NCBI GenBank assembly: GCA_977030845.1
Contig: OZ365109.1
Location: forward strand, 60,326,001 to 60,390,000
Direction: 5' to 3'
Origin: Fimbriosthenelais zetlandica
Lineage: Eukaryota
Length of the DNA: 64,000 nucleotides
Shown here: in pieces, positions 28,801-40,800 of the stretch
How the letters are laid out: the number at the start of each line of letters is the position of its first letter
How positions within the stretch are numbered: position 1 is the stretch's first letter
Notes under the pieces: model-generated
The model's input: the letters and a program-made list of their open reading frames with translations, nothing else
What the model was told of the DNA's origin: nothing
Databases searched by the model: none
Position numbers and translations under genes: made by a program

Positions 28801-31800
28801 TTCATAGTGATAACATTTTGTAGAAATACTGGCATTCATAGCCAGAAGCCTTTATATATATTATTTGTGGCTTGACATGGCTTGTACCATAAGCACAAAG
28901 TACTTAATATATTACTTTTATGTTGACTTTTGTACAGTACATAATGAAATTGGTAACATGAATTTTGCTAACTGCCATGTTTTTGGTGACACTTTGAACT
29001 TATAACCATGGTTATAATAATATTGCACCTATAAAATCAACATAATTCTGCCAAGTAACTTTTGGCTAGTTTTTAATTGATTTCGATACTTATCAAATTA
29101 CTCACTAAAATTTAACTTGATGGTTTTGGAAGAATATTATAATTTGAGGATCAGTTGGTAAGCAGAGAGGTTGCTCCTCAAGGAGTTTATAGATATTAAA
29201 ATATTAAGTAAGATAAGACAACTACAGTGATGTTTATCGTTTCTATCCCTCAGAATTGTCGCAGGTAGCCCTGAGACCGACACAGTATGATGTCACTTTC
29301 CTTGTCAATGTCAGGAGAGATATGGATGACAGAACCCTGAATGACCTTAAAAACTTCCTCCGAGGCTTCATTGCCAGGAATTTCCTGGTGGGACCAAATC
29401 AAGCAAGGATAGCAATCATAACCTATGATAATGAAGCCGATATATTGTCCTACTTAGATAGTGACATGACCCCCAGAGACCTGGACAATGTCATATCGCG
29501 CATACCACGAGGCGATACATCTGTAACGAATATTGCCCAAGCCTTGAGACGAACAAGAGATGTGTATAATACTGTGAGAGGAGACAGGACTGATGCACCT
29601 GATGTGGTATACCTTATGGTATGGAGATCTTCAGGGCAGGATCTGTCAGAAATACGAAATGAGTTCTCCTACCTGAACAGCAGGGGCATCTTCGTCATGG
29701 GTCTGGGCTTCAGCAGCTTTATAGATCGTTCCCAATTGGAAGCAGCAAGCACACCAGGCTTCGTGGTCGTTAGCCCTTCCTTCAATCAAGCCAATTCCAC
29801 TATCATATGGCAAATGACAATGCTGAGAGTATTCGGTGAGTCCACCTTGAGGACACCTCTGTGAGAATGAGCACTTTCCCCTCGTATTGTCTCCTCACTG
29901 GAAAATAAGAAAAAAAGAAAGAATAGAATACATGATGTCACTGACACACTCTCCCTTGAACTTTCTTTAAAAATCAACATCACATTAGTTCGTGTATACC
30001 TCTTTACTTTGTTCAGGTTTACACGATTGGCCACACATCTTTGTGCTTGATTATCTTCTGCATTCGACGCCATTGCTTTTCAGTTGTTGTCTCTGTGTTC
30101 AAAAAGTGCTACTAATACCCGTAGGTTGTAAACTTTCAGCGGAATATACTCCTACTTGTTACAATATTTGATAATCCCTCCCGATTCTCATCCAAATGAC
30201 CAAACACACACACCTCCACCACGTGTGATATTTCCTCAGTTTGAAATAGTGTCTGCTATCATCTTTTCAAATGCTTATACGTTCATAATAATTTGTCTAG
30301 GCCAGATTGCTTTTTCAGATTACATGGTGAGTATAATATGTGTGCCATCAACACTGTGCTCGCTTGCGCCAATTATGAATAATTTTCACAGGAACCTCCA
30401 TACTGCAGTCACCATGACACCAAATGTCACCAAAGGACATCAGTTGCTCTTAATTAGATCTGTTGATTTGAATTTCAGTTTTGGAAATCACAATAATTAT
30501 TCAATTGCTTCAATATTCCTCTGCTTTGCGCTGAGTTTTAACCATATTTTGTGGAAACTGGCCAGTTGAATATCACCTTAATTTGAAACGAATCATTGTT
30601 AGGCATAATACTATTATTATTTGTTAAAATTTTAATAATATTAGAATATGGTGTGGGCAGCTAGCCAGTATCCTTTAGGTACCCCTATTTCCAAATAAAA
30701 TTCATACAAATCGTGTTTACTAACTTCTCACAATGGGTTATTTACCAGTTGTGGGCAGCTTTCACAGGCTTATGGTATGGCGCGTGGCATAAATATGTGA
30801 TATGCCTGTGATAGGCATGGCTATATAATCGGCCTAGAATACCAATCCAAACTAAGTTTTATTTTGTACTCAGGATATTCAAATCATGACTCTTGTCTAG
30901 ATTCCTATCATTAGAACAAATCTCTACATGTCTTATTTAATGATTAATATTCTCATGATCTTGCGGATAAAAAGTTTTGAGAAATATTTTGTAAACGATC
31001 ATTTATATCTTCTTAATTCCTATTATTTATTTATCCTTTGTTATTTTAATTTTAGGTTCTGGAAATCCTGTAGCGCAGCCAGGTAAAGTGTTTTCTTTAA
31101 TTCCTCTGTATATTAAATGTACGATTACTCTTTATAATAATATTTATTTAAAATATATTATTTAAAAACCTTCCCATGTAGATTATAATAAAGAAGGAGA
31201 CTATCATTTCCATATTTTCCTTCGGTAATCTTTGTTATAAAATATTCTTTCTTTTTGATATATATAGGTGGATTTATATTAGTAAATGGCCGAAATATCG
31301 TTGGAAACAATGTGACACTACGAAATGCCTACTTGCCTTCTGGCGCCAAAAAATCATGGTTGGACTACGACAACGAATTACCTGCTGGAAGACTGAGGAG
31401 ATTCTTTATCTTTATACACAATACTACTAGTAATTCAGAAGATACAACTGTATATATAAGACTTCAAATATGGAGCCCCACTGATGCAGTCACATTTACC
31501 TATACACTCAAATGGGAGGAACGCATTTCAGTAACCCTCGCATCACCTAGAGGAATATTATACACGGTGAGTACCAGTTATTTTACTCATGTGCATGTAT
31601 TATGTCATGACATTAACTTTTTAGGTAATCAAAATAGTTATGGGATTTGTTTCATAACAATCATGATGCGCTGATATTTCATTAGCCAATTGATGACATG
31701 TAATGCAGCAACAACTGAAATACAATGTATACCCAGCTTTGAGTTAGGAAAGGTATCGCAATAACCCAATTGTATTGTAATTATAATTATATCTTTTCAC

Positions 31801-37800: not shown

Positions 37801-40800
37801 TATTGTACATACACTGTATACATGTAAAGTATAGGTAGACTGTCAGTCTAATCTAATGGACGGTGTACAGAATAATACTAGACGTATGTGCAAAAAGTGC
37901 AATGTAAGAATCTACATTTGATATTGACATAAAAAGCTTGCTTTCCTGAGTTTGAAGTCTGTGCATCTCCCTCTTCAAAAACTTGTCCTTCACTGTTAGT
38001 TTTGTATTGCCATTCGGAGCATGTTCTATTCATGGTTCAGTTAGGGAGTTCAACTCTTACTCCTAAACTTGACACTGGGGGGATTTCACATTGCCGAACT
38101 AGTACATGATCACCTGCGATGGTGTGGGTGTAAATCAATGACCGTAAAATTCTGAAGGATAAGTTGGAGAAGAAAGTACTACAATACAGGAAATAGGGTC
38201 ATTAAAATTCCAATATGACCACAACATATAGCTCTAAGGAATGTTGAAAATACAGGCTATGCTTTATCCTACTAATATTAAATGACAGAAACAATCACCC
38301 TAAAATGAGCCTTTCACTAGGTAACCAACCTTAGATACTGTTAAATGCAATGTAAAACAGCTTTTCAAAGAACTAAACTGGTACATTAATATTATTCAAG
38401 ATTCAATGCTCTAGACATAATATATGTTATAATCACCATCATTGGAGGCCAAGCAAATAACGTCAATTGCCAGCTGGCTTCCAACCCAGTCTTTTCCACT
38501 CATTACTGGGACTATAGGTTTCTCCAGGTCCTTTCCCTGTGGTTTTTGTAAATAGTTTTCTGGTCCGAGACACAAGCACTTGTAGTTTTAAATACAAGCT
38601 TCAGCCTTCAGGGTAGATGTCCTTGGTTAGGGGCCCATGTCAAGTGACAAGGAGCTAGAAAGTTATTCATATTTTTAACCTTATTCTAACTAACTGGATA
38701 TGTCACGGGACACCTATGACCCTATGTTAAATTATGAGATCAAAACATTACGTAGGGACAATACCTGAAAAATATGCTCTCTCTATAATGGACCAATGTC
38801 TTCTGAAGCAGTTGCAAAATTGACTTTCCAGTGGAAATATTGGGATTTTACCTTTTTACTTAAACAGTATTACAGGGGGAATGGAAAAATAATAACGATA
38901 TAATTTTTTTTCAAGAAAGGAAATGATCTTGCTTTGAAACATCATTAAATTGTTGTGGTGTCAAAAGCTCACATCTAGTTTTAAGTGCCTTCTACCCCTA
39001 AGCTTGTAAATGGATTTCAGTAATATCGGGATAAACCGACATGTATATTTGCTTTCTTCCCATGATAGTCCCATAGTTAAGACTATTCATTTTTCCTCTG
39101 TGCCAATTGCCTCTGTTGTTGTCCCCATTTTATACCATGAACATTCTCGTGGTCACAACAGTCTCATTCAGTGTAACCCTGCAAGGGTTTGTGCAAGTAC
39201 CCGCAATAAGGGCACAAGGGTGCATACCGACCTCTTCCTGACTGGTGTGCTAATGTGGGAGTACCAGTTGGTGGTTATCTGTCACGTTACCTGCACCCAG
39301 CTCAATGAAGATCTGTCCCAAAAGGCACTTGATCAGAAAAGATTATTAATAAGTTGTGCCTCTGACATAAGAATGTGCTCTATAAATAGGTACTAAAATA
39401 TCTAAGACTATATTATAATATTATGACTATTTAAACAAATATATTCTATTGTTGGTTAAACATCGCAAAAATCGATGGGGAATCTTATCGCCAAAATATC
39501 TTTGATTTGATTCGCCATCGCCAAATCCTATTTGGTGAGCAGATCGTTCTGCAATGGACGCAATATGAAAGAGAGTAATGCAGTTAAAAACCGGTTCTCA
39601 ACAGGAGAAATGCCCTTGGGACTAGCAAACTGGATCAATATACATAGTTCGATGTCTCCAGATCCTTATATTGTGGTTGGTTTTAGTGTAAACCTATGGG
39701 CAAATATTGCTATGGACAGACAGTGGTGTATGAGGGATAGTATTCATTCCAACTATACATACGTACATGGTGAATGTACCAGGAGGGTGTGAGTCTCACC
39801 CCCAACAAAAGCTGTCACAAATATTTGTTCACGATACAGAGGCTTTTCCAAAATTCAAAGATTTATCCCATGGTTTTATATTACATTACATAAATACAAT
39901 ATTATGGTCATCATCATATAAAGGCCTATATGCACTCTAGTTCGAGAGTCTGCTGGTATATAAGAAGGAAATTGGAAGAGTAAATCACAAACACAAATAT
40001 GCAATACCAAACCCACAAGGAAGCTCTAGCGAGATCTGATATTGGAATTCTTTCTTACTGTTGAAATGACATAATATTAAAAGTTTAAGACATATTCTCA
40101 TTTTTTTCTTTTCAGTATATACTTCCAGAAGATGAAACAGTCACTATAGATGAGGGTGATCGCATAGGCTGGACCTTTGAAACAGACGGTGGTGCTATAA
40201 GTTTTCAATATGTGGAGAGCCACAGAACATATTTTCGGAAAGTTGAAAATGACGATTTTCCAGTCGTTAATCAAGAGTATGCTTTTGACAACATTCATCT
40301 CCCAAGCATATTCTCCGTTGCAGTCGATATTGAACAAGGTAAGATTTAATGTACATGTAATGTATGTTTTCTGTGATAAGAAAGGAACTGATCATACAAA
40401 TCTTCTGATTTGATGTCTTAGATAGCATCACAACAAATATTCCACGTTATCAAAACTGAGTGTTATTCATTATTATGGAGTCTGGCTCACAAGCTCTTAA
40501 GACAATGCTCATTGGCAACGATTTTATAATGAAACTTACTCACGTACCTATCCCATTATATCTCAACATATTTAATGCATGCACACTTAATATCTCCTGG
40601 TTTAGCTACTTTTTTCAGTATATATCTCATTGTATTATAACGTAATGTATGTATGTACACATAATGACTCGTTGTTTAAAGAGCTATTTATTTCAATAAT
40701 AGAATTAATGAACACGTGTATAATACACGTACAGTTATGTATCTTTTTTATATCGTTTTAATTTATAACTGGGGACACTCGGTGTTTTAGTGTTTTCCAG

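Follow-up and report, generated by a model that had tools for sequence, protein, structure and literature searches.

A new, unnamed domain family with a predicted jelly-roll fold recurs before collagen helices and heads a giant Thr-rich collagen of Fimbriosthenelais zetlandica

The window analysed here was a stretch of 64,000 nucleotides (nt) of Fimbriosthenelais zetlandica (assembly GCA_977030845.1, contig OZ365109.1, positions 60,326,001 to 60,390,000 of the forward strand), and it carried on its + strand a very large invertebrate Thr-rich collagen gene. This gene showed the characters of the annelid giant cuticle collagens, namely a very long helix, a Y position dominated by Thr and a terminal globular part, and the globular part comprised an N-terminal VWA array and the domain that is the subject of this report. 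This domain, hereafter the head domain, was encoded by two exons in front of the triple helix. It represents a new, unnamed family of a known fold type, whose repeated association with collagen helices had not been noted before. The features of the host gene were arranged as follows:

~19.9–29.8 kb, + strand, six VWA-domain exons (open reading frames, ORFs; Pfam VWA)
29254–29835, + strand, last VWA-domain exon of the N-terminal array (Pfam VWA, E 2.6e-17; acceptor and donor both phase 1)
31056–31082, + strand, 27-nt linker mini-exon (ttttag/GT...CCAG/gtaaag; both boundaries in phase 1; sequence-inferred splice sites)
31268–31566, + strand, domain exon 1, encoding the 99-residue N-terminal part of the head (with the motifs GNNVT.R, SW.DYD, PAGRL, IRLQIW.P and GILYT)
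31567–40115, + strand, phase-0 intron of 8,549 nt (donor GTGAGT, acceptor (Y)n-CAG)
40116–40338, + strand, domain exon 2, the C-terminal 74 residues, ending in a split Gly codon
41394–41483, + strand, first triple-helix exon, in which the helix starts ~6 residues past the domain end
41394–60886, + strand, Thr-rich Gly-X-Y helix exons over ~19.5 kb, rich in G-x-T
62262–62414 and 62624–62890, + strand, EGF-like, Cys-patterned open frames 3′ of the last helix exon (60886), read by eye

Domain exon 1 was bounded by the acceptor tatatatag/GT and the phase-0 donor ACG/GTGAGT, and it contained 99 codons, preceded by the last 2 nt of a split Gly codon. Domain exon 2 began after a long pyrimidine tract ending in cag/TAT, comprised 74 codons plus 1 nt, and ended at the phase-1 donor CAAG/GTAAG. 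The 27-nt mini-exon preserved the frame from the VWA exon into domain exon 1. Phase 1 was found at the acceptors of all 6 VWA exons, at the mini-exon and at 22 helix-exon acceptors among the boundaries inspected (19.8–60.9 kb). Thus, the head domain was a 1-1 phase module with one internal phase-0 intron. The original prediction had placed both exons at these positions, and it had called the intron the only phase-0 intron of the gene and the domain the last one before the helix. Both exons indeed had strong splice sites and a phase-0 junction, all other boundaries inspected were in phase 1, and the next exon opened the Gly-X-Y helix. The EGF-like frames past the helix would fit an EGF stalk, and the host gene probably extends beyond the window end.

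The joined product of the two exons was 173 residues long and contained no Cys and no Met, and F, Y or W accounted for 24 of the 173 residues; its earlier description as Cys-free and aromatic-rich was accurate. Nine uninterrupted proteins aligned with residues 7–172 of the joined sequence (E 1e-27 to 5e-43). One of these was P0016, a complete ORF on a 1.1-kb contig with flanking untranslated sequence, which crossed the junction as ALYTYILNGTF where the window reads ILYT/YILPEDET; the window exons abutted in this alignment (A1) with no gap or overlap. The joined domain matched the family profile over positions 9–172 (E 2.7e-62), of which exon 1 covered positions 9–100. No second, alternative or mutually exclusive copy of either exon was detected by tBLASTn in the window or the intron. 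Because the joined sequence aligned end to end with nine uninterrupted proteins, the join of the two exons appears to be more than chance, and splice-site quality together with homology argues that it is real. The claim that one domain is split by an intron was supported by the same alignment.

Family members were searched for with HMMER, using only exon 1 as the query against the full set of 1.84 billion representatives; 184 representatives were found at E ≤ 1e-3 (best E 8e-22), and 58 remained at E ≤ 1e-10. Most of the 184 were exon-sized ORFs called on genomic contigs, and the complete uninterrupted domain was present in the nine proteins mentioned above; word-index protein searches added few further full-length relatives. 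Exon 2 had 40 exon-level homologues, including those of Lamellibrachia satsuma and Owenia fusiformis, and the closest exon matches were annelid. The members shared ~170 residues of homology with the motifs GNN(V/I)T.R, W(V/I)D, RLQ(I/V)W(R)P, GD.IGWT.E, H.T and LP..FS.A. All named family records belonged to annelids (Owenia fusiformis, Ridgeia piscesae, and Lamellibrachia satsuma), and the ESM Atlas clusters with the domain carried the automatic labels Porifera and Annelida. Several architectures were observed among the proteins:

P0052, from another organism: signal peptide, domain, collagen
P0047: two domains, VWA, collagen, VWA
P0063: signal peptide, domain, transmembrane segment, tail
P0101 (Owenia): domain and two PAN domains
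P0016: domain and Ser/Thr-rich tail

Phase-1 introns bound the module, and therefore it can be shuffled between genes. By its architectures, the head domain is a mobile extracellular module found with collagen, VWA, PAN and transmembrane segments. It had at first been treated as peculiar to this gene, which was not the case, as the 184 representatives and the several architectures indicated a widespread mobile module. A complete copy very like window exon 2 was also observed at residues 683–861 of P0100 (1,108 residues, encoded on a 6.3-kb Logan contig). The remaining 900 residues of P0100 had no Pfam match, and chimerism of either the contig or its gene call is possible.

Orthologous exons of exon 2 were found at locus L023 (an ENA assembly) and locus L024 (Lamellibrachia satsuma), with amino-acid identities of 74 and 67%, respectively. 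The nonsynonymous divergence (dN) of exon 2 from these exons was 0.20–0.26, and the synonymous divergence (dS) was saturated. This suggested that exon 2 is under strong purifying selection. The near-invariant polar and aromatic residues of the family were W, D, Q, W, P, G, W, T, E, and H.

The failure to assign the domain to a named family, already reported in the original prediction, was upheld, as there was no match in Pfam, among PDB sequences or among Swiss-Prot models. At E ≤ 10, Pfam gave nothing on both halves, on eight intact homologues and on all 12 rows of alignment A1. The gathering thresholds of Lectin_like (PF18560), DUF4082, F5_F8_type_C and CBM_6/32/35 were not reached, and these families gave nothing even at E ≤ 10. 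A profile search of PDB sequences returned chance matches only (E ~0.5). Pfam matches to DIX, DUF1797 and PH_FAN were rejected as sub-threshold noise.

Among the collected proteins there were 193 domain matches, of which 137 covered the N-half only, 40 the C-half only, and 16 both. The N-half fragments stopped at profile positions 101–104, and of the 119 such ORF fragments that came from other genomes, 93 ran on as V-x after an (L/I)(Y/W)-x motif, which is how a translated phase-0 GT donor reads. At paralogous loci in the same genome as the window, the C-half exon began at profile positions 99–105. The family had a phase-0 intron after a G(A/I)LY-x motif, and the module was flanked on each side by a phase-1 boundary. 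The position of the internal phase-0 intron is conserved across the family. In the AlphaFold2 model of P0016, the intron cut a long predicted beta-strand (model residues 97–109, junction after residue 100), and therefore the two exons would not be structural sub-units.

The domain-splitting intron was long in several species. L023 and L024 both lacked exon 1 over the 10 kb upstream of exon 2, and the intron was ~4.8 kb in a third relative (L028), in which a reverse-transcriptase ORF was found downstream. The 8.5-kb intron of the window had no Pfam match in its ORFs and no tRNA or Rfam match. Within it, 39 nt at 35254–35292 were 92% identical to positions 2913–2951 of L023, inside the matching intron of that orthologue (E 3e-9), against only ~74% identity of the exons between the window and L023, and no other copies of this stretch were found by DNA search of the own genome. 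This stretch may represent a regulatory element conserved within the intron. A dispersed repeat of ~90 nt was also observed at 39473–39565, with at least 39 other copies of 74–95% identity on many contigs of the genome, and it belonged to neither a tRNA nor an Rfam family.

The profile search of the same genome gave 16 exon-level matches at ~10 loci. At five loci, the window included, a collagen exon followed the C-half exon at a distance of 0.13–1.1 kb. The other four, with distances of 0.13–0.8 kb, were:

C1:60.26 Mb (G000:C1:60260179-60263836; L002, L006, L018), minus strand, a short Pro-rich helix and then a transmembrane-like segment
C1:1.11 Mb (G000:C1:1110723-1129886; L003, L007, L025-L027), plus strand, a diverged head immediately followed by a helix that spans at least 14 kb
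C37:2.35 Mb, a collagen exon following the C-half exon
C25:14.99 Mb, a collagen exon following the C-half exon, where the in-frame join could not be made

In P0052 the head also lay directly before the collagen helix. Where the frame was traceable, the spliced linkers to the first Gly-X-Y were 3–11 residues long (6 in the window, 4 in P0052), and the C-terminal boundary at the paralogous loci was in phase 1. As a control, 117 kb of non-helix DNA of the same genome, read on both strands, contained no Gly-X-Y run of at least 7 triplets besides the paralogue's own. In the orthologues L023 and L024 exon 2 was followed by a Thr-rich helix, and L023 showed the same layout as the window, with exon 2, a short first helix exon and then the Thr-rich helix. 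The recurrent adjacency of head and helix with linkers of 3–11 residues, together with the conserved internal phase-0 intron, is new.

The paralogous collagens carried diverged heads (~36% identity). The paralogue at C1:60.26 Mb was located ~62 kb upstream of the window, with its head split over at least three exons and with one short Pro-rich collagen exon; by its exon order it would be a membrane-anchored mini-collagen carrying the head domain. The collagen gene at C1:1.11 Mb had mixed Thr and Pro in the helix Y position. Just upstream of its head (L003, 606–1336), an open frame contained a unit of ~40 residues (...SISHQVGRLVVSISHCFLYLSPGGAFGCFYLSLFS...) repeated several times.

The fold was predicted with AlphaFold2 for P0016:35-212, using an alignment of 143 rows that comprised full domains, N-halves and C-halves. 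The model had a predicted local distance difference test score (pLDDT) of 96.5 and a predicted template modelling (TM) score of 0.91, with 13 strands; no helix reached four residues. The original prediction of a beta-sandwich or jelly-roll was supported by this all-beta sandwich. In the PDB, the Foldseek matches were all weak (best TM score 0.53), among them TNF/RANKL chains (E 4e-3 to 5e-2; TNF-family TM scores 0.26–0.39). The TM scores to TNF-family and C1qB models overall were 0.22–0.39. Against Swiss-Prot models there was nothing below E 0.011. In the AlphaFold DB clusters, clear family members were detected at 25% identity (A0A2R2ML18 and R7TPM3), followed by remoter look-alikes in other animal proteins, a DUF4082 protein and bacterial or phage proteins. 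The structural neighbours were re-ranked as follows:

Douge central-fibre protein, residues 481–691: 11.3
Bxb1 tail tip: 11.1
Cyanophage A4 capsid protein: 11.1
Cwp84 lectin-like domain: 10.1–10.2
CBM-like domains of AcXE and polyvinyl-alcohol esterases (CBM, carbohydrate-binding module): 9.0–10.0
CBM32/6/35, F-lectins, lectinolysin, discoidin and PHR: 6–7

No LamG/TSPN and no C1q/TNF chain occurred among the top 50 re-ranked neighbours. The modelled jelly-roll beta-sandwich superposed on CBM32, CBM6/35, F-lectin and discoidin domains. The fold of the head domain is predicted to be a variant of the galactose-binding-domain-like or lectin-like jelly-roll, a fold type already known, because its neighbours were lectin-like and CBM-like and included neither LamG/TSPN nor C1q/TNF. 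Of the roles originally proposed for the domain (trimerisation, chain registration, or carbohydrate binding), the binding of a carbohydrate or another ligand gained fold-level support from these lectin-like, CBM-like and phage-fibre-tip neighbours.

Here, we propose that the head domain is a ligand-binding head, probably glycan-binding, and that the N-terminal end of the helix displays three copies of it, and we give this reading a probability of about 0.5. The two exons would encode one secreted, Cys-free jelly-roll beta-sandwich of ~170 residues, belonging to an unnamed metazoan extracellular family. It is the last non-collagenous (NC) module, ~6 residues from the first Gly-X-Y of a giant Thr-rich cuticle-collagen helix. 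With a linker to the helix this short, three heads must pack round the helix axis, so that the assembled trimer would display three heads around its N-terminal end. The heads and the VWA array may together form a terminal globule, and the collagen stalk would then lend three-fold avidity to the putative binding of a glycan or other ligand. The head might in this way anchor the collagen to a partner in the cuticle matrix or cross-bridge the two.

This reading was favoured because the closest analogue is a phage-fibre tip, whose construct with the C-terminal domain (CTD) binds glycans, and because lectin-like or CBM-like domains make up the other close neighbours. The central fibre of Douge forms a C3 trimer whose tip domain (residues 485–688) ends the trimeric stem, and on an array, defined mycobacterial glycans were bound by a tip-CTD construct (PMC13033339). 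Annelid cuticle collagens have been described with globular domains on a very long helix (PMC11766948), and the heads and the VWA array are the obvious candidates for these domains. As points against a ligand-binding head, the glycan binding of Douge was that of the tip-plus-CTD construct and not of the tip domain alone (PMC13033339), and the modelled sequence was that of a homologue 42–44% identical to the window halves, not the window's own. We infer the ligand binding, the identity of the ligand and the oligomeric arrangement alike.

Another explanation is that the head is a trimerisation, nucleation or chain-registration domain, in which three copies would associate first, start the zippering of the helix from the N- to the C-terminus and perhaps select the chains. 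The head lay directly before the helix at five loci and in P0052, and with linkers of 3–11 residues the three head C-termini must converge on the helix axis. The best structural neighbour belongs to a trimeric phage fibre and is packed about its three-fold axis, and the diverged heads on paralogous collagens are what a chain-selection code would need. However, several members are free of collagen (P0063, with a signal peptide and a transmembrane segment; P0101, with two PAN domains; and P0016, with a Ser/Thr-rich tail), P0047 has tandem heads with a VWA domain between them and the helix, and the fold is not of the C1q/TNF trimer type. A homotrimer prediction with three copies of P0016:35-212, in which the alignment compiled here was not used and no controls were run, scored 0.00 and counts neither way. 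We regard this explanation as doubtful.

Both functions might also be combined. The head domain would then found a hitherto unrecognised class of collagen NC domain, an ancient head-and-helix supradomain of sponges and lophotrochozoans that registers three chains at the N-terminus and, as a lectin, reads the galactosyl-threonine coat or another cuticle glycan. We consider this unlikely; if true, it would provide the assembly code still lacking for the annelid cuticle with its non-banded, plywood-like build.

It seems quite improbable that the domain is an N-terminal pro-domain or a passive spacer, which would aid secretion or distance the VWA array, perhaps be removed at maturation, and have no ligand of its own. 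Its position matches that of the N-propeptide and NC modules of other collagens, but a part with no ligand fits poorly with the strong purifying selection and the near-invariant polar and aromatic residues, with the reuse of the head module in non-collagen membrane and PAN proteins, and with the observation that extracted annelid cuticle collagens keep their globular domains (PMC11766948).

A highly diverged TSPN/LamG (concanavalin-like) domain, as in vertebrate collagens that associate with fibrils and have interruptions in their triple helices (FACIT), or a diverged gC1q domain is very improbable: the FACIT collagens share the order of VWA, beta-sandwich and helix, and Foldseek listed the TNF/RANKL chains, but no Laminin_G, TSPN, C1q (PF00386) or PF00229 match was found in Pfam even at E ≤ 10, the conserved cysteines of TSPN are all absent from the head domain, its predicted fold is not concanavalin-like, the TM scores to TNF and C1q were low and neither was among the top 50 neighbours, and gC1q sits C-terminal to its helix whereas the head domain is N-terminal. 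Both identities were rejected.

The annelid cuticle collagens rank with the longest protein rods known. In the literature searched, almost nothing was found on their molecular parts besides the sugar-coated threonine helix, and we know of no account of how they are nucleated, brought into register and layered orthogonally. The present analysis identifies a module at the N-terminal end of such a helix, and this module is a predicted well-folded and strongly conserved member of a large unnamed family. The head recurs before collagen helices of very different lengths, including the short helix of the putative membrane-anchored collagen. For matrix biology it offers a concrete, expressible target of 20 kDa, and for the domain databases a new family for curation.

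The position of the head domain and its logic are the same as those of TSPN. In FACIT and related collagens (IX, XII, XIV, XXI, and XXII), TSPN is a beta-sandwich NC module of ~200 residues that lies between VWA and helix and projects from the fibre. The two differ in fold, which is concanavalin-like in TSPN and predicted to be galactose-binding-like in the head domain, and in the conserved cysteines, which are present in TSPN and absent from the head; no sequence or structure match was found between them. The best fold neighbours were the tip of gp20, the central fibre protein of mycobacteriophage Douge (PDB 8ZDP/8ZDQ; residues 485–688), and the Bxb1 tail tip (9D93). They share 8–9% identity with the head domain and no relationship at the sequence level, and they belong to phages and not to an animal matrix protein. 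The Douge fibre has a non-collagen stem with the head C-terminal to it, whereas in the window the head is N-terminal to the helix. The lectin-like domain of Cwp84 from Clostridioides difficile (4CI7/4D59; PF18560) and the N-terminal CBM-like domains of AcXE and polyvinyl-alcohol esterase (7TOG and 9KQZ) are likewise fold neighbours. However, these are appendages of bacterial enzymes with 5–11% identity, and the head domain had no Pfam match to PF18560 or to a CBM family.

The principle proposed here is that of the collectins, ficolins, C1q and scavenger receptors, in which three identical heads gain avidity from the trimeric collagen stalk that carries them. The heads of these defence collagens are C-type lectin, fibrinogen-like, gC1q and SRCR domains, all C-terminal to the helix. 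The head domain differs from them in its unrelated fold and in its N-terminal position, and its binding is only proposed. Beside the C-type lectin, fibrinogen-like and gC1q heads, it would add a fourth type to the globular heads that collagen stalks carry. The neighbouring paralogue, apparently a membrane-anchored short collagen with the same type of head, resembles the design of the defence collagens.

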